This document shows, in pieces, positions 2,595-64,000 of a DNA stretch of 64,000 bases. The notes under the pieces were generated by a model that saw nothing but the letters and a program-made list of their open reading frames with translations, made no database searches and was not told where the DNA came from. The stretch is from Bugula neritina (Eukaryota; Animalia; Bryozoa), in the NCBI GenBank assembly GCA_964035545.1, contig OZ037768.1, forward strand, positions 23,221,319-23,285,318, given 5' to 3'. Positions within the stretch are counted from its first letter, which is position 1. Each line of letters opens with the position of its first letter. Position numbers and translations under genes: made by a program.

Positions 2595-4200
2595 GTCACT
2601 TCCTGGCAGGTTTTGGCACAGACGAGTGAGCTGTTGAGGCTGCAATGGCATTCATAGATTTAGCAAAGTCATGGAGCTGTGAATAACTCAACTAAAAACA
2701 AACATTGTAACTGTCTATTGGCAAATAGTTGAAGTATTTACAAGGAAAAACATTTTCTTCAACTCTTGTAACATGAACTCTTTTATTAGCCTAGAACAAA
2801 TTTTTCCCATATTTTTAAAGAGTTTTTCACCAAAACAACATTAAGCTATGTAAAACTTTGTGTTTAGCTGAAATTGTTTAGATGTTTTGCGTGGAAGTTT
2901 GAAGTATTGGCTGGGTACAGTGATAGACTTTGAAAAGCATTTATGTGCAATGATTGAGAAATTTCAATATCTTAAATTCTTTAATTTGCTTAACAAAAAC
3001 ATGACTTCTTCTGCTACAATATCAGGTGAGAACAGCTTTTTCTCAACTTCTCCATTACTGCACCTATCTCTTGAAAAAAAAGGAGACTAAATGAGCTGAA
3101 ACATAGCTAAATAGAAACGTAGCTCTAGCCGTGGCTGTAAGAGAAGCAGAGCAGAGGGACAGGGCCGTTGAGTGTCCTCCAACTCACTCCCTCTTTAGCT
3201 CTTGCCCAAGTTAACAAAACAGCTGTGCTGGTACTGTGCAACGTTTCTTTTGATCTGACTAAAATAACACACCGTGGACTGCCCATTGTTGGGTACAAGT
3301 TGTGTCAGCTCTAAGGCCACAATATTATTCAACTAATAGTAATAATATATATAGCCTTAGTTTGGTGAAAATTGGACAGTTTCAAAAAGAACCTTGTTTT
3401 AACCATTGTGCTATAACTTTATAATATATAAGTGCCTTTAACATCGGTACGGTTAACTGCTCTCCAAACAAAAAGACTCAAATCTATAATAGGAAATGAA
3501 AAGGTTTAAAACTGGCACGTTGACACACAATTTTGTGACTCTACACTATATGCACTATATTACAAAGATGTTGATTATTGAGAGGTAATGTATTTAATTA
3601 GTGTTGTATACAACTTTGTCCTTAGAACATGCAGTGCATTTTATTTTCATGAACTTAGCAACATGTTGCATTATGTATTTGGAACATTTTTCAATACATT
3701 CATACATGTGTGTGTGGATATGCACGTAATTCTTCATATAAGACTAGTTACTGTCGATACATCATGGAAAACTAACAAGCTGCAGCCTTCAGAAAAATGC
3801 CTTACTTTATGAGAAATGTTAGCTATGTGTGTCATCATATTATTCTGATGGTTGCTGGTTAGTTATATAACCATTCCAATCATTATGTATCATCAAACAG
3901 TTATATCTGAATCTCTTTGATTAGATACTAGACAAACTGTGACTCTACATTTCTAACAGGATGTCTGTATGTTTCGTAGCAACAACTAAACAAATTAGTT
4001 TTGTTAAGTGAATTTATTTCAAGTTTTCGAGACAGTATGATTACATGGTAGAACTATTTATTTATTTCAGACAATTTGCCATGCTGTGTTACGTAATTCT
4101 TATGTCAACGACCTCCACTAGTTGAGCTGCTCCATGGGAGATTTTAAAGTAAAGAGAAGAGATGGGTGTGGCTAAAGATTACAGATGATTTACTCATTGT
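2595..4200 (+). pseudogene. Probable decayed multi-exon gene, family not recognised
   Basis: Several segments with AG and/or GT boundaries translate as protein-like text interrupted by stops or frameshifts: ~2595 HFLAGFGTDE*AVEAAMAFIDLAKSW; 2882-3025 VLRGSLKYWLGTVIDFEKHLCAMIEKF..; ~3513-3584 WHVDTQFCDSTLYALYYKDVDY*E; ~3790 RKMPYFMRNVSYVCHH; ~4071 TICHAVLRNSYVNDLH*LSCSMGDF. Confidence 0.4.
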
Positions 4201-45364: not shown

Positions 45365-48300
45365 TCAGTAAGGGGAGTAGTATCCACGCCCCCTACCCCT
45401 AAAATAATACATCACATCTGGTTACCAAACAATATAGCAAATCTTTTGTAAAAAAAAGAGGTGAACAGCCTAATCTAAGAAGTATGTAGATAATATAGTG
45501 CAGGAAATCAATACGAACTTGAAACAATTTTATAGTAATGGCTTTTGTTAACATTTTGTTACCAGTAGGCTATGCTTATATGCAAATGATAATGTTAAAG
45601 CAAGAGAACACAACTTCACAAATACTGCCAATTTCTTGCTATGAAGAAACAGTTGGGTCACTAAATAAGCTATAAGTTGTAGAAAATAATAATAAAGTGA
45701 GCAAGTTTGATACATACCTGTATCCACCCCTGTATGACGAGCGTCCTCTATACCCCCTATAACCACGAGATCTAAACCTTCCTCTCCCTCGTGGGGGACG
45801 GTTTGTGGAACTGTGTCCAGGTATGTTGGTACGTTTGGAGACAACCTACACAACCAGTCACTTGCAAGTTAGAACGCACTTGATAAACAGAGAGAGGAAT
45901 TGAGTGTTAGTTGAGGGCCAATTTTGAGAATATGTTAAAATCACTTGACCTGTAATTTTTACAGGACAGAATAATGTTCAAAATTTTGATTAATTTCAAT
46001 AAATTATGCATCAAAGATATTCAGGTATTCTGCTTAGTACTTATGTGTTTTTTTTCAGCAAAGATATTCACAAGATATAGGGAGCTAGTATTATGAATGT
46101 ATTCTCACGCTATAGACAAGACTATCAGAGTGTAAAATATGCCAGTTTATACAATCAGTGTGCATCCAAGTGTAGAATAATAAACCAGAGCAAAAGACTA
46201 GCACACAGAGTAGAGAGGGGCAGGGTAGTAGAGGGAGGGGGAGAGTAGAGAGAGGAGGGTAGTAGAGGAAGGGGAGAGTAGAGGGAGGGGAGAGTAGAGG
46301 GAGGGGAGAGTAGAGGGAGGGGAGAGTAGAGGGAGGAGGGGAGTAGAGAGGGAGGAGGGTAGTAGGATGAGGGTAGTAGAGGGGGGTACCTTAATCTGAC
46401 GGCCCCTGAACAATGAGTCATCTAGTGCTTGTGCTGTTTCAACAGACTCCGTGTCAGTAAACTCTATGTAAGCGTACCTGAATGTAGCATATTATATAAT
46501 ATATATTACAGTAAATTTTATGTAAGCGTACCTGCATGTAATATAATATATATTACAGTAAACTCTATGTAAGCGTACCTGCATGTAATATATATTACAG
46601 TAAACTCTATGTAAGCGTACCTGCATGTAATATAATATATATTACAGTAAACTCTATGTAAGCGTACCTGCATGTAATATAATATATATTACAGTAAACT
46701 CTATGTAAGCGTACGTGCATGTAATATAATATATATTACAGTAAACTCTATGTAAGCGTACATGCATGTAATATATATTACAGTAAACTCTATGTAAGCG
46801 TACATGCATGTAATATATATTACAGTTTAGAAATTATAGTGCACCAATAAACTCCTTACGAGGTACAGAAAACACTGCGGCTGCACAAAAACTACTTTGC
46901 TGAAGAAACTGGATCAACTATCAACTTATTGATGCGACACACCAAACACATGGATGTACCAACTATCTGCAGCAAATAGTAGAAATAACACTAGACTCAC
47001 CCTTTGGGATGACCGCTATATTTATCACAGTTAATTGTGACTCTGTTTATTGAACCGCAACCGTGAAAGTGACTTTCTAATTCCTCGGCTGTGGCCCCAT
47101 AATCCACCTGCAAATGTATGAAAGTACATACTATACGATATGAGAGTATATACTATACAGTATGAGAGTATATACTATACGGTATGAGAGTATATACTAT
47201 ACAGTATGAGAGTATATACTATACGGTATGCGAGTATATACTATACAGTATGAGAGTATATACTATACAGTATGAGAGTATATACTATACAGTATGAGAG
47301 TACATACTATACAGTATGAGAGTACATACTATACAGTATGAGAGTATATACTATACAGTATGAGAGTATATACTATACAGTATGAGAGTATATACTATAC
47401 AGTATGAGAGTATATACTATACTGTATGAGAGTATATACTATACAGTATGAGAGTACATACTATACAGTATGAGAGTACATACTATACAGTATGAGAGTA
47501 CATACTATACAGTATGAGAGTATATACTATACAGTATGAGTATATACTATACAGTATGAGAGTATATACTATACAGTATGAGAGAATACTATACAGTATG
47601 AGAGTACATACTATACAGTATGAGAGTATATACTATACAGTATGAGAGTATATACTATACAGTATGAGAGTATATACTATACAGTATGAGAGAATACTAT
47701 ACAGTATGAGAGTATATACTATACAGTATGAGAGTATACACTATACAGTATAAGAGTATATACTATACAGTATGAGAGTAAATACTATACAGTATGAGAG
47801 TATACACTATACAGTATAAGAGTATATACTATACAGTATGAGAGAATACTATACAGTATGAGAGTATATACTATACAGTATGAGAGTATATACTATACAG
47901 TATGAGAGTAAATACTATACAGTATGAGAGTATACACTATACAGTATGAGAGTATATACTATACGGTATGAGAGTATACACTATACAGTATGAGAGTATA
48001 TACTATACAGTATGAGAGTATATATGTATACACTAACATTTCCAACGTATATTGACCGAGCATCAACTTCCTTCTTCTCCTCGGGAGATAGAAAAGTGGG
48101 CGGGGCTGTAGGCGTGGCCGTAGGACTGGTCATGTTCATCTCCTCTGCGTGGTACTGTTTCAACCTGCTAGCTTCCTCCTCCATCTCTTTCATCTTCATC
48201 CTAATTCTCTCTAAACTCTACAGCATTACACTTATCTGGTAAGTAATATGCTTATACTAACTATGAACTACAAATACCCACCGCTGTAGTCTGAGTTACA

Positions 48301-54835: not shown

Positions 54836-55738
54836 AACAAACACCCTGAGCAAGTTTTTATAGAAGCTTTTGTTTTAAGAAATACATATATTGTGGTTCT
54901 TGATGATTGAATTATAACATTGTAAAAGTTGGATTATTTTTTAAATATGTATAACTTAAAAGCCAACTGTATTGTTGGAAAAAAGTAGGAATATTAAGTA
55001 TAAAATTGGACTCGCGACAATCTGTTTCTCCAATAATCTTAAAAACAAGATGTCGATCGTGGCTCATCGTAGAGTCCTTAGCTTTATGATACTTTAGGAT
55101 CCAAGGTTATGTTTATTGAAGCTCAGAAAATAATATTAACTCCATCACTTGGTTATAGTATTCAGGAATTTGTGTAAAACCCTTCTAAGGTCAACTCTAT
55201 CAACATACTGATAAAATTAAAGATACTGTCAACTTTAAAGCGGCTTTACAATGTGTTAATTGGTTGTGTACATCATATTATAGGTTCAAGAAATGGCTTA
55301 TTTCAGAGAGACTTGGACGGAATGAATATGTATCACATGTATATACTGTATACATATACTGTATGCATGTTCTGTATGTATGCACTGTATGTATAATATA
55401 TATGTATATAATTATTGTATTTGTTGCCATTTTTATATAGTAATCTGATTTTAGATTTGATCCTAAAGAATAATTGTTATGGAGTTGCCTGCTCACAAAA
55501 CAAAGCAGCAGAGTCTAGAACTTATATCCATAGAGCTAGAGAAACATCATGGAGTGTAGTAATTACAGGTTAAAAAGGAAAGATTAATTAAGTTGGTATA
55601 TTTTCACTGTTAGAATATGCTCATAATATCAGGGCTGTAACAACTCAACAACAGTAACAAAAAACAACACAAAAATAAACAGAACACAATATAGCCATCT
55701 AGTAAACAGTGGAGTAAACAGAGAAGGTAGGGAAAGAG

Positions 55739-58700
55739 TTATGGGCAAGGGAGGGCATGCACGCAGTGGTCTATCATGCAGAGTCGTTTGTAGTAGAGTC
55801 GAATGACTGAGTGACGATGGCGCTTGACTTGAGTCGAGACGGAGGTGAACGAGACCTCTTCACACTTTCCCTCCAAGTATCTGTACCAACCATTGAGATG
55901 TGTGTTGTAGACATCAGAACCATAGTACACTTTATCACTGCTTCCTTTACATACTCGGTATACCACTGAAAGGATCCATAACAGTTAATTTAACCAATCA
56001 AATTGTATTTTATATTCGAGGATGTTATGTATGCGGAGTGCAGAATAAATGTATTACATCATAAAAACAATATCCTATAAAACTTTGTGACAGTTCACTG
56101 TCTGACCAATTACAATCTGACAGAGGACCGTTACCTGCGTGCAGCTGGTAAGACTTGGCATCAGACGGCAAATATTTCCTGGCTGTCTGGGAAAGCATTT
56201 CTAAAATACCAGAAGATGCTGTTTGAATAAAGAAACTTTTGCAATCATGTTGATTCATGTTTCCAATTCAGGTAATCAAGTAAACAAAGCTGCAGTCAAA
56301 CTAGACTAAATATTCTAAAACAGTGAATGATGTGAACAGAATAGCAGCAATGTAGAAATACTGCGGACAGTCACAGAGTCTGAGAGAGTATCGTATGACT
56401 CACCGTCCGTCAGCTCAAAGAACTGACTAATCTTGAGATGATGAGAGCCGGCCACGTCTATCATGAGGATGTAGGGAGACTGATCTATGGAGATAAACTG
56501 ACGCTTACAAATCTCCTCCTCACTCATCCCCCTCCGAACTCTCGAGCAGTAGAAAGTTTCTCTGAGGGCCTCTTCAATGCTCACCAAATTCTTTTTCTTT
56601 CCCTAAAACAACGCAGACTTGCCATTTTTATACCCTGTAAAAACTATTTGCATATAAATTAAATTTCATCTGCCTTTACATTTACAGTTGGCGCTACACT
56701 GCCACAGTACTTCAGATGTACTACACACAAACTACAGGTGTAGTGGTTATTCTTGTATATAATGGCTATATATGTATTTATTGTTAGAGCCAGCTTGGGA
56801 AACGATGTAGAGTTCTTCCTTGGTTTAATAGTGCAAGTTTGCATTGAATAGAGGACAACTCCAGAGTAGCAAGTGTAATATTTACCCTGTTGACAAACTT
56901 GAATATTCCAACAACACAGAAGGGACTTGCAGATGACATGTACTTTATGTAAGGCCAGTACTGCCTGCATTTCTCCACGTTGATCCTGTACAGTCCTACA
57001 AAGAGTTGGGAGATGCTCTTTGCCTCCTCTAAAACATACAGATGACGTCAGAATTGGCGCTATAATAAAAAATGATTATTGAAATAAGACGATTTGCCAG
57101 GGTTTTATTAGCTGTGTTACTTTCAACGGTAACACTTTTTAAATTTAGTTTAGTTGAAAATACTCTCTCGCCATGTTTAAACACATAACCTGCTATGTAT
57201 GTATGACTTCTTGCATTAATTGTGCCAAGAAAAATTTTATGCATTGGGCCTTCATTGTTCCATAATGCCACTGTTGGAGTTATCCACACTACAGAGAGAT
57301 AGCGTTTGTATGCAGCACAATGTCATCACATGGAGTGGATTGCTGATACAGGAAAACAAGAGGAATACAAGGCACTATTGTGAGCTGTTGGGAGTTGTCT
57401 ATCTAAATCAAGGTGTACCCTACACAAGCGAGACAGTTACCTGTGGGATGGAGATAGTCCAGCTCTTGGACTATGAATTTGATGAGCGAGCAGGTAGGCA
57501 GGTCGCATTTGGCCTTCGCCACTTCACTGTTGGCAATCAGCAGGTGAAGCACATCCTGCATCTTAGAAACTATTCCGTGGAAATTCATCTTCTCTGTGTA
57601 TGCAATCCTGAAACATAGCAAGTCTACAAGATGCAGATCTTCTAGCAGTGTTAGAAAAGAAACATTTGCTAATATTTGTAGAGTTCTTGTGCTTTTATAG
57701 CCTTACGTTTTCAAAGTCACCGTCTCGATTGGGAACTCACACTATGCTAATTTACTTAAAAACATTTTCACCAAAACAATAACAAAAATCAATAATGTTT
57801 TTATCTTTCCACTCCAACTACACAGAAATAAAACTAAAGCCTCTATCTTTCCAAGCCAGCAGTGATTTAGTGCAGCACACTGCAAATCATTCAAACAACT
57901 ATTTCACAGGTATAGTGTACTATATGCTCATATTAGTAATTAGAGATATATATATATATATATATATAGATTTATTTTACAAGTTTGGAATTTGTGATAA
58001 TTTTATTGTCAGATCTTTAAAATACTCCCCATATACATCTAACAGCAGGGGGAGATAAAACTAAACATACAACACTTACATCGTATCTAAAATTGGAGTT
58101 TGAGGACTTTTCTGGTATCCCTTGACAAACCTCTCACATAAGGATGCCAATACCAGCTGGATGGTCGAATTCATGAAGTTGAATGCCAGGGAGCTGCTGA
58201 AAGGGGCTGCCAGAAACAAACAACATACACTATGACATATATTACAACATACACTATGACATATATTACAACATACAGTATGACATATATTACAAGCTAC
58301 ACTATGACATATATTACAACACGCAGTATGACATATATTACAACACATTATGACATATATTACAACATACATTATATGACATATATTACAACACACACTA
58401 TGACATATATGACAACACATTATGACATATATTACAACACACACTATGACATATATTACAACACACACTATGACATATATTACAACACACACTATGACAT
58501 ATATTACAACACACACTATGACATATATTACAACACATTATGACATATATTACAACATACACTATGACATATATTACAACACACTATGACATATATTACA
58601 ACACACACTATGACATATATTACAACATACACTATGACATATATATTACAAGCTACAAGGTATCTTTTTCATACAGTTACACAAGTTTGAAAGTATCATT

Positions 58701-60852
58701 TTAGATAGAGAGAATAATATATAAACAGAAGATGTTTTTGCAGCTCAATTCTAAAGGGTTGTACTTATGAGGAGTTGAAATGTTATTGCAAAGAAACCCC
58801 TTGTAAACCAGTACACTTATGGAGTTGTCTTAACAATGACAACTTCAGCTCGGATATGTAATAAGTGATGATTACAGCGCTGGAAAATCAATGAACTAAT
58901 CAAATTCAAATTGAGACATGTAATATTGGTAGCCATACTTGAAGAGGCTTGGAAGACTTCGCAGTGAGTGTACAGGGCAATCATCTGGATAGGCAGCACC
59001 AGCGGAGGGACGGCAGAGTTGGCTGTCTTGGCGCAAACTTGGCAAGACTTGTGACCTCCTTTACAGTGCATACAGTCTGCCGGCAGCACAGCTCTTCTAT
59101 CAACTGGCAGCGCTGAGGGCAAGGACGTCTAAAAATAAAAAAAGTTACGCTCAGTTCAACCACTTATTGGAACACAACGAGACATGCCTGATGATAAAAG
59201 TTGGTTTCTTTACAAATATTGAAAAACCTCGCCCGTCCATTCAGTTTTAGTATGGCCGCTGCGTCTTATTTAGCTTCAACAGATTATTAACCAAAAGACA
59301 ACTTGCCCAGTTGTTGTTCTGGCCCTCAAAGGCTGGGGGCGAGTAGTAACCAGGGACTGGGCCAGACTCCAATGCAATCACACTAAAGCCAGCAATTCCT
59401 TTGATGGAGATGTTCTCCAAGTAGGCAGGCCAGTTCACAGGCTAAAAACCACAAGCAATGGTAGAATCTTAACAGAAGAAATTGATGTGTCAAAAAGGGC
59501 AATAATGGGGAAACTGAGAAAAGCCTGTGTTCTAGATAAAAATTGCAGAAACAAATTATAATTTCAACCTGCAACCCAAATTCAATAACTGGGGCAATTT
59601 TAATTTATATAAACTTCATCAAAACAAAGCAAAGTTATATGTATCTAGTTAAAATTACTTAAGAACTAAATATAGTTGTGACTAGTTTAGGGATTACTGA
59701 GCCATGAGATGAGCAAATGACGTTTAGAGTTGGTATTTTCCTCAGCCATGCCTACCTGTGGTTGGTTCAGTTGTATAGGCATCTGGTGAACCATCGGCAT
59801 TGCCTGGGGAGTGTAAAGCTGTGGAGGAAGCATATTATAAGCCTGGTAATTAGGCGGACCAAAATCCTGCGCCACATGCACCGGTGATGGAAGCATTGGT
59901 GACAGCGGCAGGGAATTGAATGAAGCAGTCATTATTGGTTGAAGCATGGGCTGCACTGGGTATTGCAATAGAGGTGACATTGGCACAGGTTGTAGCTGTT
60001 GAGCATGGCGATCAGGCACTATGGGTGACACTGGTCTTGCAGGTACTTTCATGGTTGCAGCAGGTGATTGGGTAGATGCCACTGTAGGATCCTGCAGAGG
60101 TCTCACAGTATTCTGCTGGGAACTTTCTGGTGTCGGTGCATCGCTGATTGAATGGGAGATTATGGGTGTCGACCGCACATTTCCGGGTGTAATTGGCGAT
60201 GACCCGACTTTTGCAGAATCTTGCGTAGAATCAGGCGAAGGTAGTGAGCCATCCGAGACGTCGGCGTTTGTTGACGGTGGAGAGGAGCTTGAGTCATCAC
60301 TTGGATTAACACTAGTGCTATCTGCAACTGTTCACAGCAGTTATGCCAAAGTAGATATATATTCAACAATGACACATTATAAAGTATAATAAAATATTTC
60401 AAATCTATTTCTCACCTGCAGTTTCCACCTTTAAACTGGTTTTCCAAGGAAACTAAAAAACACAAGAGTTATTAAATGCATGGAAATACAACTCCTATTT
60501 GGGCAGTTGGAAAAAACCTTTCACTAAATAATTTGGGACTTGAATAAACTTAGTAGCTGTGCTTAGCTTCCTGATTGGCCTAAGCCATGCTGTTTTGTTG
60601 CATTATTTGAACAGGGAATAGCAAGCGACATAGAAAATATTTTTAATACATGCCAAGTTTTTGTAAAATCCACTGTATTTACACCATGATTTCATATTTT
60701 GAATGCCTTGAGGGTTTTTTAATTATAAAAATCAACAAGTTTGCAGAAATACAGAAGTTACTTACGGTTACAGTAGAGGAACAGTTACTAAGATAACTAG
60801 ACAAATCCGCTTCTCCCTTTTCTTGAGTTGTAAAACTTAACTTACTAGACAT
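55739..60852 (-). CDS. USP10-derived paralogue lacking catalytic residues (candidate pseudo-deubiquitinase), ~649 aa, 11 exons
   Basis: Exons 60852-60766, 60452-60416, 60327-59756, 59441-59307, 59128-58939, 58206-58080, 57607-57441, 57028-56886, 56602-56404, 56200-56135, 55965-55739 give 1950 nt with no internal stop. Co-linear with neighbouring USP10: TPILDTM/TPVLDAM, ISQLFVGLYR/ISKIFGGLLR, SIEEAL/TIEDAL, YQLHAVVY/YKLFAVVY, LYYKR/LYYKR. Confidence 0.85.
58220..58652. repeat. 22-24-bp minisatellite (ACAACACACACTATGACATATATT) x ~18 next to the exon 6 acceptor of the USP10 paralogue
   Basis: Visible tandem array ending ~12 nt from the acceptor at 58207-58209. Confidence 0.95.
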
Positions 60853-62089
60853 AACAGAAGGCAAAATTTTACAGCAACAAATAACTTAATGTGAAACTTT
60901 TCTTTTCCAAGCAGGAATGAAGGACTAAAAAGCTTTGGAAAGCTACTTAAAAATAGCTTTCCTATTTTCAGCTTTCTACCTATAAAGCTGATAGCCCTAC
61001 AGCTATGTTATATCTGAAAGCTCATTTTATAGAAGTAAAGCCTGAACATGGGGGGACTATTAATATTAACACTCTGTAAAAAACCAAAAGCCCTAAGTTG
61101 ATTTTTCAGTTACTCTTTCGGGCCAACAAGTTATTTAGTTTTGATAGCAAATAAGGCTTTGGTTGAGTTTTCACATGTATTCATTTATTATGTACAAAGC
61201 TCACACCTCACCCAGTAAAGAATCTAAAAAAAATTTCCGAGCTTTGATATACAATTAAACTATACAATTACTTCCAGTCATTTTCAAAACTACAATTGAA
61301 GTTTGGTGACCACTTTTAATAAAAAGATTGCAGTAGTTTTGAATACACTTTCTTGGACAGACATGAAGAAAGAGCGGATATATAATTTGAGAAATAAGAA
61401 TTACATAATGCACACGATCATAATGCAACTTGTGTACTTGCCATTCTAACTGCCAGAGTATATCATGTACTTGAACACACTAGTTTAATAATGTAGCTTT
61501 GCAATTAGAAAAAATTCACTAAAATTTAAGACAATACATCAACATGGCTGTTAATCAAAGTATGACAATCTCAGAAAAATAGTGAATCTAAACTTTGGAC
61601 AGACAGAATAAAGAAAGAGGGTTTGGCAGACCCAACTGAAGAATCTCGAAGAGTTATAAAATAATTTAGACTTAATACAATCATGACTTAGCTAAAATAC
61701 ACATGTAAATTTATAAAGTGATACTACAATTTGATAAGCAGACACTGCATGCAAGTACCTAGTTGCACCGTGTCAAAAGTAAATAAGAGTTATATATTTA
61801 TTATTAACGTAAAAACCTATTTTAGTATGTGAGACTTGCATCAATTTGAAGACAGAGTAGTGCCTTTAGGCAACAGCAGCTGCAGCCTCGGGGATGCCAC
61901 ATTAAATCACAATCTGAAAGCCGGCAGTCTTGAGCTATTTGCACACAATTTGATTGTATAGTCAGAAATTGAGTGTTCAGCATTTCATTCTACCTGCCAG
62001 TATTTCATTCTACCTGCCAGTATTTCAGTCTACCTGCACTAAGCAAGGTAGCTCTTGCTATCAGTGTTTCTATTTCCAAGTATGTGTAT

Positions 62090-64000
62090 CTAGCACCGGA
62101 GTTTGGACGACATAGACGATTGCATCTGGTTGTGGCCGGACTGCATCATGTCACTTCTCTTATAATACAACAGGTAGGGAACACAAGGGTGTCTAAAGTC
62201 CAGCACGTCTTCAGGAGCGATTACTTTAGTGGAGTTGTCGTCAAACTTCACCCACGACTGCGTGCCGTTATGAAAGACGTCTGTGTGGTAATGGCCCCCG
62301 GTGGTCTTGGCGCCAGAGTGGTACACCACTGTAACAGAAACAAGGTGGGATACACCACTGAAACTCAACACAACAAAACACACCATGGCTTCCGCACACA
62401 ACACAATGCACATCAATACATCGAAATGTTAAACATGAAAGCTTTCCGCACCTGCAAACAGCTTGTATCTCCGCTGCTCCAAGGGGAGGGGTCTCTTCTG
62501 TGAACTCATCAGCTCTGTAAGAAGTCAACAGGAAATAGTTTTAGAGTCACATGTGTAGAAATAATGAGCTGCACATTCAACAGGCTGACAACATATAATA
62601 AAATAACATTTCCTATACTGCTGGGAGGACATAACTAAGCAGCTTATACCACGTACTATAATTATACTACATACAGCTGGCTGTTACTACGTACCGCCAT
62701 CAAACTCCAGAGTTTCACTGAACCTAAGGCTGTGAAGCACTTTCTGCGACCCGCCATCGATGTCGTAGACGAAGCACTTGAGGTGCACAATAAGTATGGG
62801 TGGCAAGAGTTCAAAGGTCAGCTTCCTGTGAGCATCCAGCAAGGTCTTGGTCTTAGGGCACTGGTACCCGTCAATAATCTCTTTGCTCACGAAATCCTTC
62901 AACGCATCTTCTATCGTATTGCCACTGGTTGTCTGGAACACACAGCGGACACTTTATAACTTGATTACTACATAGTAACTAGAGTTATCTCCCCACTGCA
63001 CAGCTTGTATTGAGCTATTCTACTACAGATTGCCACTTCAGTCTCACCTGCACGTTGAGAGGAACTGTGAAGAATGGCTCCAGCACTGCTGAGTCCGTAT
63101 TCTTGCCCCCAGTGGACAGGGAGGACCTGAGGAGGCCCCCGAATATCTTGGAGATAGGCGTGCTAGTCTTGTCCACGTTGCTGGCCGTGGGAATGGCCTT
63201 GTTCCTGTGTCCCACCTGCAGCCACTCGCCGTCTTCCTCGTCGTCTGAGCTGGAAGCCTCGTTTCCGTGCCCGTTCATCTGAGACACTGCAAAGGCAATC
63301 AAGTGAGCTGGTATTGGAAGGGTAAACGTATGACCAGAGAGACTGAAAGGTAGACTAGAAAAGCTGTATTGATATGAGTTCAGAGTTCAACCAGTTGCAC
63401 TGAAAAAATTACCAATCAACAAGACAGAGACGGGGGGGGGGGAGAGGGAGAAATTGTAAGACAGACTAACACGTGTTTCTACGTAACGTACCTGGCGAGG
63501 ACTTGCCATGGCGCAGCAGAGCCCCGATCTCTTCGTGCAGTTTATTCAGCAAGCATGTGAGGAATTCTTCAGCGTCCTCCTGTTTCCCCCTTTGAAAGGT
63601 ATTTTCAGAGGTCTTCAGTTTATCCAGCACATTGTACACCGACACGGGTTCAAAGGGCGCTCCGTGTTTCAAGTCTTTTTTGCTTCTCTTTTTATCTTCT
63701 ACTTTTTCAAACTGATTGACAAACTCAACCCTGTAACACACAGCATACTCAATAGCCAATCAGAACACAGAGATTTACCACAACATCAAAGTCAAAACAA
63801 TCTGCATACTTAGATATGAAAGCGAGACCAGTGTGTCACTGTCATTGCCATCCAAACTGAAAGCTGAGTTAGACAGGGTCTACAAATACTCACATAGCAT
63901 CGAGCACTGGAGTTACCGGCCCCTGTCTTCCCAGTGGTGGATATGCAGGCAGAGATTTCAGCAGTTGGTAAAAAGGGGGACAGGCTAGAAGTGACTGGAG
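62090..64000 (-). CDS. USP10: Ubiquitin carboxyl-terminal hydrolase 10, 3' part (5' end beyond the window)
   Basis: Exons >64000-63894, 63730-63492, 63286-63048, 62932-62695, 62514-62452, 62328-62090. LQSLLACPPFY, GKQEDAEEFLTCLLNKLHEE, TPISKIFGG, LPPILIVHLKCFVY, His box VVYHSGAKTTGGHYHTDV..WVKFDD..YLLYYKR. Confidence 0.93.

Follow-up and report, generated by a model that had tools for sequence, protein, structure and literature searches.

A tandem USP10-derived gene in the bryozoan Bugula neritina encodes a predicted pseudo-deubiquitinase under strong purifying selection

A 64,000-nucleotide stretch of the genome of Bugula neritina (contig OZ037768.1, positions 23,221,319 to 23,285,318; hereafter the window, in which coordinates are given) carries on its minus strand most of the catalytic half of the deubiquitinase gene USP10 and, 1.2 kb downstream of it on the same strand, an 11-exon, stop-free gene of 649 codons (60852-55739). 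The second part of this gene is a degenerate USP-like domain, in which the residues needed for catalysis in the USP family have been replaced and which is nevertheless under very strong purifying selection. We consider this sequence, here called the paralogue, to be a protein-coding gene in its own right. It would have originated when USP10, or at a minimum its catalytic half, was duplicated in tandem in the lineage of this bryozoan, and we give this reading a probability of roughly 0.7. On its sequence, it is predicted to be a lineage-restricted pseudo-deubiquitinase.

The relationship between the two genes is most evident in their exon-intron structure. The catalytic half of USP10 consists of six exons (64095-62090) with the sequence boxes NWCYVNSILQ, QEDAEEF, GGHY and FDD; because the gene extends past the end of the window, the next 8 kb of the contig (L009) were added in extended coordinates. 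The last six exons of the paralogue are collinear with these six exons. The six introns that precede or separate them have the phases 1, 2, 1, 0, 1 and 1 in both genes, the phase 1 intron before the Cys-box exon included, and three codons split by introns are common to both (a slash marks the intron): a Met codon AT/G, a Glu codon that is G/AA in the paralogue and G/AG in USP10, and a Val codon G/TG. The sequences themselves also retain a likeness. The joined domains reach a Smith-Waterman score of 92, compared with 34.3 +/- 4.9 in 1000 shuffles (z = 11.8; Gumbel P = 1.5e-7). When cognate exons are paired one by one, paralogue exons 6, 8, 10 and 11 exceed their shuffles with z of 5.2, 3.0, 4.8 and 5.2, respectively, and 29 of the 30 non-cognate pairs stay at z <=1.7, the remaining one (E11 against U6) being at 2.7. 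In a global alignment, identical residues occupy 84 of the 269 aligned positions.

The likeness extends to the USP family in general and is strongest with USP10. A profile of 18 His-box exons from other USP genes of the genome, with USP10 excluded, scores 9.6 bits on the paralogue, which 1 of 2000 shuffles reaches. A full-domain profile, made from 9 unrelated USP domains on small contigs of the assembly, gives 14.2 bits in a single collinear alignment (profile positions 11-285 against residues 11-280; 0 of 2000 shuffles), with USP10 as a control at 124.6 bits. Among 16 USP genes of the genome, the intron at A/VV.H is common to USP10 and the paralogue only, and the other 14 genes read through this position. 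Moreover, in pairwise scores, exons 10 and 11 together have a z of 10.4 against USP10, while none of 20 other USP His-box exons exceeds a z of 6.6. Both the shared introns and the top score among the USP genes compared support a descent from USP10 specifically. The domain of the paralogue has 309 residues, compared with 405 in USP10. The segments missing from it are the acidic insert and loop regions of USP10, and the conserved strands and helices stay in order. This collinearity, with deletions confined to loop and insert regions, suggests that the USP fold has been kept.

The active site, in contrast to the exon structure, is rewritten throughout. In the Cys box, NWCYVNS of USP10 aligns with FNFMNS of the paralogue, so that the catalytic Cys becomes Asn; in the His box GGHY aligns with KVYY (His to Tyr), and FDD aligns with YLE (Asp to Leu). 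These three replacements agree between the pairwise alignment and two independent profile alignments. The QEDAEEF box is gone, its position reading AKCDLP, and, as judged by eye, the Asn of the "LIN" ahead of the Cys box, which we take to be the oxyanion-hole Asn, is also replaced. The paralogue is a homologue of an enzyme family without the catalytic residues of that family, which is what a pseudo-deubiquitinase is understood to be. An earlier note on this DNA, made from its letters and open reading frames, had described a tandem, 11-exon, stop-free gene of about 649 residues after USP10 on the same strand, with its last six exons matching those of USP10 one-to-one, intron phases of 2, 1, 0, 1 and 1 and a split Met codon AT/G, and with an active site rewritten to AFNFMNSTIQ, VVYRVCKGSSDKVYY and WYRYLE and a lost QEDAEEF box. 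All of these features were recovered as described, the gene lying on the minus strand.

The gene model was built by chaining stop-free segments via splice sites (Table 1). Nine of its introns are GT-AG with pyrimidine-rich acceptors, and intron 4 is GC-AG, with a donor (TGG/gcaagt) in the typical context of GC donors. An acceptor for exon 10 that ends in CAG and lies 18 nucleotides upstream, which would give a product of 655 residues, was rejected, because its AG reads AA in a sister lineage (see below). The acceptor tattttag at 56201 is kept in that lineage; it gives 649 residues, places the junction exactly at that of USP10 and removes a six-residue "insertion" relative to USP10. The paralogue is present as a single copy in the genome.

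A comparison with a closely related lineage provides the evidence for selection. A search with exon 3 yielded a 91%-identical fragment and thereby four contigs (L010-L013, from two sequencing runs and two Joint Genome Institute metagenomes), and a search with the exon-9 frame yielded a fifth (L034). L010-L013 are >99% identical to one another in their overlaps and L034 equals L012 over the shared part of exon 9, and we infer that the five belong to one sister lineage of the species complex. The contigs, which are labelled B. neritina and come from two metagenomes and three runs, were compared with the window over 55397-62391. Introns differ by ~13% and the synonymous divergence (dS) is about 0.22, which fits distinct cryptic species within "Bugula neritina". 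L012 runs from the last exon of USP10 to exon 9 of the paralogue, so the tandem layout is kept in both lineages, and L034 holds exons 9-11 with the stop codon. All 20 splice sites of the paralogue, including the GC donor, are kept in the sister lineage. Indel columns are many in introns (e.g., 305 of 732, 111 of 472 and 125 of 169), whereas the exons show only a 6-nucleotide and a 9-nucleotide in-frame indel, both in exon 3, and a 1-nucleotide gap in exon 8 of L012.

Substitutions, counted by the Nei-Gojobori method, amount to 84 synonymous and 36 non-synonymous changes over 644 codons of the whole coding sequence, a ratio of non-synonymous to synonymous rates (dN/dS) of 0.11 at a dS of 0.22. 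They are unevenly spread along the gene: codons 1-117 have 15.5 synonymous and 21.5 non-synonymous changes (dN/dS 0.40), codons 118-340 have 25.5 and 13.5 (dN/dS 0.15), and exons 1-5 as a whole have a dN/dS of 0.245. In the USP-like domain (codons 341-649, 308 of them compared), there are 43 synonymous changes and 1 non-synonymous change, D526E (dN/dS 0.005; binomial P = 5e-28). For scale, the last exon of USP10 has 9 synonymous changes and 1 non-synonymous change (dN/dS 0.027). Exons 10 and 11 are protein-identical between the two lineages: the "dead" motifs themselves are conserved. Purifying selection, which the earlier note had deduced from the intact frame and splice sites, is thus now measured, and the value near 1 that it had named as the mark of a pseudogene is far from what the related lineage gives.

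Several observations weigh against the reading of a USP10-derived, inactive and independent gene. For paralogue exons 7 and 9, the similarity to the USP10 exons is not significant when each is taken alone. The Pfam model PF00443 (UCH), which matches three exons of USP10, matches no exon of the paralogue, even at an E-value of 10, and a six-frame scan of the genome with it finds USP10 and nothing at the paralogue (C4:23277057-23279524). Likewise, tblastn of the joined paralogue model against the USP10 region has no match at E 1, as the signal is divided among short exons. The retention of the USP fold rests on collinearity. One donor of the model is GC, and the start codon and exons 1 and 2 are supported by splice logic and conservation only. 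No spliced product of the paralogue was found in protein collections, and the model comes from genomic sequence; one sequencing run that contains the stretch consists of DNA contigs that read through the introns, with no splice joints. The searches with exon 11 were equally blank. In a library of 1.84 billion proteins it matched only two tandem-repeat proteins, by chance; among the sequences of solved structures, all it matched was the nanobody framework GWYRQAPGK, again by chance; in a protein atlas its scores were low and meaningless; a homologous-protein search with its frame returned nothing; and metagenome scans with exons 11 and 9, from which records close to this genome may have been withheld, gave nothing confirmed. 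The comparison of substitutions spans only two closely related lineages. Within it, L012 has the 1-nucleotide deletion in exon 8 (at window about 56979), a site covered by one contig. Of the 7 changes downstream of this gap, 6 are synonymous when read in the original frame, and we therefore attribute the gap to a mistake in one metagenome contig, probably in its assembly. Finally, the inactivity of the protein is a prediction that sequence does not prove: USP39 and USP52, once considered dead, were subsequently reported to be active via non-conserved residues (PMC10919355).

These reports lend some plausibility to a protease still active on ubiquitin or on a ubiquitin-like protein by way of non-canonical or relocated residues, since USP39 and USP52 activity was described despite their missing triads. 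All 12 Cys and 11 His of the domain are kept in the sister lineage, and an enzyme could also be under such very strong constraint. However, replacement has affected all three triad positions, QEDAEEF and the conserved Asn of the Cys box together, and no new Cys or His stands at or beside the aligned catalytic positions; the Cys in VVYRVCKG and the His in NTHLNG do not align with them. We therefore regard retained proteolytic activity as quite unlikely.

A gene that is not independent is about as improbable. The exons could be alternative 3' exons or read-through of USP10, or exons 1-5 could belong elsewhere; the two genes lie on the same strand with the first paralogue exon only 1.2 kb from the stop codon of USP10, the intergenic stretch is 93.6% conserved, above the introns, and the start codon is a prediction. 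On the other hand, an AATAAA lies 288 nucleotides past the stop codon of USP10 and the next exon led by an ATG lies 1.2 kb downstream, which fits two transcription units. The 29 codons of this exon are protein-identical in the sister lineage, and exons 1-5 are in one frame with exons 6-11 and are themselves under purifying selection. Splicing from USP10 into the paralogue would duplicate or truncate the USP domain.

Still less room is left for a decaying USP10 pseudogene whose frame is open by chance or through recent origin. The extreme divergence from USP10, the silence of Pfam, the deletion in exon 8 of L012 and the missing transcript evidence would all suit such a pseudogene. The counts of 84 to 36 over the coding sequence and 43 to 1 in the domain would not, nor would the conservation of every splice site and the confinement of frame-breaking indels to introns, and the L012 gap is best read as a contig error. 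With a dN/dS of 0.005 in the domain and 0.11 overall, and with splice sites and frame kept, a pseudogene is therefore ruled out for practical purposes. An unrelated orphan gene that resembles USP10 by chance, to which the blank plain tblastn and the failure of single exons to match any USP in Pfam or (exon 11 only) among solved structures and in the 1.84-billion-protein library might point, is hardly credible given the Smith-Waterman P for the joined domain, two independent USP profiles that align collinearly beyond nearly all shuffles, six of six equal intron phases, the equivalent split codons and the position next to USP10.

The N-terminal half of the paralogue (residues 1-340) is rich in Ser, Pro and Gln (S 14%, P 14%), with a PPNY motif at 199 and a CMHC-x6-CQVC element at 296-309, in which the sister lineage has the same four Cys but not a His that lies between them. 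It shows no likeness to the N-terminal frames of USP10 (z <1.5), and no copy of it was found elsewhere in the genome. Duplication of the whole gene and partial duplication with a new N-terminus are both compatible with these data. USP10 carries a PAM2 motif (LLNALAEEFVPG, at about 67881). Neither PAM2, the partner motif of PABP, nor the G3BP-binding FGDF was found in the paralogue, and because both are absent, a role as a G3BP or PABP decoy seems unlikely.

The sequence features can be brought together in a tentative scenario. A tandem duplicate of USP10 would have lost catalysis, been strongly remodelled and then been fixed under very strong constraint. Since today's rate of protein change is too low to account for the distance from USP10, a burst of change after the duplication is implied, and it may have been followed by the fixation of a new function. 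The remodelled USP surface could then bind a partner without catalysis, such as ubiquitin, a ubiquitinated substrate of USP10 (e.g., the 40S subunit) or USP10 itself, and the N-terminal region may recruit other partners, after the manner of the scaffolds USP39/Sad1 and PAN2. A non-catalytic binder or scaffold is the most likely role; a reader of ubiquitin or of the 40S subunit, or a regulator of USP10, is possible. A more specific proposal is that the paralogue is a dedicated partner in the USP10 pathway: it could regulate USP10 by binding it, in the manner of a "prozyme", or it could read or protect the 40S proteins whose mono-ubiquitin USP10 normally removes. This we hold to be doubtful, somewhat less so than an active protease. 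If true, it would be the first pair of a USP-class enzyme and its dead paralogue, a principle known so far for JAMM deubiquitinases and some metabolic enzymes; we know of no USP-class enzyme that needs a dead paralogue.

Table 1. Features of the USP10 locus and the downstream paralogue (window coordinates; a slash marks an exon boundary).
Feature	Position	Strand	Remarks
USP10 Cys-box exon, NWCYVNSILQ	64095-63894	-	first 95 nucleotides outside the window (window part 63894..64000); starts in phase 1; ends AT/G; Pfam UCH match in six-frame scan
USP10 exon with QEDAEEF box	63492..63730	-	
USP10 exon, acidic insert and ISKIFGG strand	63048..63286	-	
USP10 exon, fingers/palm, LPPILIVHLKCF	62695..62932	-	
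USP10 penultimate exon, ELMSSQ...YKLFA	62452..62514	-	
USP10 last exon, His box GGHY, VVYHSGAKTTGGHY, WVKFDD, stop codon	62090..62328	-	
AATAAA after USP10 stop (288 nucleotides)	61797..61802	-	likely poly(A) signal of USP10, by sequence
Paralogue exon 1, ATG...gtaagt, 29 codons	60766..60852	-	protein identical in sister lineage
Paralogue exon 2, 37 nucleotides	60416..60452	-	
Paralogue exon 3, Ser/Pro/Gln-rich, PPNY	59756..60327	-	only in-frame indels (6 and 9 nucleotides) against sister lineage
Paralogue exon 4, GC donor TGG/gcaagt at 59307	59307..59441	-	GC kept in sister lineage
Paralogue exon 5, CMHC-x6-CQVC	58939..59128	-	four Cys kept in sister lineage
24-nucleotide minisatellite in paralogue intron 5, 18 copies, 89% matches	58220..58644	.	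ends 14 nucleotides before exon 6
Paralogue exon 6, degenerate Cys box AFNFMNSTIQ	58080..58206	-	ends AT/G as in USP10
Paralogue exon 7, AKCDLP at QEDAEEF position; TCSLIKFIVQEL aligned to TCLLNKLHEEI	57441..57607	-	
Paralogue exon 8, ISQLFVGLYR aligned to ISKIFGGLLR	56886..57028	-	USP10 acidic insert missing
Paralogue exon 9, SIEEALRE..., SPYILMIDV	56404..56602	-	
Paralogue exon 10, EMLSQT...YQLHA, acceptor tattttag	56135..56200	-	split codon G/AA, against G/AG in USP10
Paralogue exon 11, degenerate His box VVYRVCKGSSDKVYY, WYRYLE, LYYKR, stop codon	55739..55965	-	protein identical in sister lineage
First AATAAA after paralogue stop (~620 nucleotides downstream)	55112..55117	-	by sequence

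Some further observations concern repeats and neighbouring sequences. Arrays like the intron-5 minisatellite occur at dozens of sites on at least eight chromosomes (C1-C7, C9), and the length of the minisatellite itself differs greatly between the two lineages, with 305 gap columns. From ~50 nucleotides past the stop codon of USP10, a 20-nucleotide unit is repeated three times (61978-62037), likely within the 3' untranslated region. An intron of USP10 (L009 about 3250-3650, extended coordinates 65250-65650) contains a tandem repeat that is open in all three minus-strand frames, and its HTPLVSLCC and TGVTVLSYA units give rise to long spurious open reading frames within USP10. At 47981-48199 on the minus strand, an open frame resembles, by eye, the start of an exon of a PABPN1-type poly(A)-binding protein. 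Elsewhere in the assembly, small contigs (among L035-L043) carry full-length UCH domains in one frame, for example C34:39409-40449, C83:3509-5101, C63:44738-45685, C14:15166-16110, C43:3107-3970, C117:628-1527 and C230:44857-45807. Their frames are broken only by many TAA and TAG codons, with almost no TGA, and translation with the ciliate code yields the USP domains intact. As unplaced contigs of the assembly, they have the look of ciliate DNA, whether from an epibiont or a contaminant.

USP-class pseudo-deubiquitinases (USP39 and PAN2, and also USP53 and USP54) are few, ancient and universal. The closest known system to the paralogue is its own parent, USP10 (yeast Ubp3; peptidase family C19), which adjoins it and shares the collinear domain and the six intron phases and positions. 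The blocks common to both are NS.IQ, TP.LD.M, IS.(L/I)F.GL.R, IE.AL, P.IL, E(L/M)(M/L)S.Q, Y.L.AVVY, DV, W and LYYKR. Unlike USP10, the paralogue is without the catalytic Cys, His and Asp, QEDAEEF and PAM2, and is invisible to Pfam UCH; its domain is about 95 residues shorter, with loops and acidic insert gone, and its N-terminal half is unrelated. USP39/Sad1, the pseudo-USP of the tri-snRNP, has no catalytic Cys or His and is a selected scaffold with a Cys-rich N-terminal element (PMC3988567, PMC10919355), and thus resembles the paralogue in having a triad-less USP domain under selection together with such an element. However, USP39 is ancient and occurs throughout the eukaryotes, contains a ZnF-UBP domain and can still be identified as a USP by profiles, whereas the paralogue is found in one bryozoan species complex only, is derived from USP10 and stands in tandem with its parent. 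PAN2 (USP52), of the PAN2-PAN3 deadenylase, likewise uses a degenerate, triad-less USP domain as a structural module, but there it forms one protein with a DEDD exonuclease and a WD40 domain, neither of which is present in the paralogue. Dead paralogues that act as activators ("prozymes") are known for trypanosome AdoMetDC and DHS, and the MPN- partners of JAMM deubiquitinases are comparable (PMC5201418, PMC3663545, PMC10919355). As in these systems, an inactive duplicate is kept beside an active parent, and this is a possible mode of action for the paralogue. Unlike in these systems, a physical or functional link of the paralogue to USP10 is hypothetical.

A literature search found no paper on an inactive relative of USP10. 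The reach of the finding is limited to one bryozoan species complex so far, and it is a case at the level of sequence. Within these bounds, the paralogue would represent the birth of a pseudo-deubiquitinase in a single animal lineage, with the active parent adjoining. Despite the erased catalytic elements, few sequences of the locus are as constrained as its remodelled domain. The pair may thus offer a natural case of what the USP fold does without catalysis, and of how fast a pseudoenzyme gains, and then freezes, a new surface.

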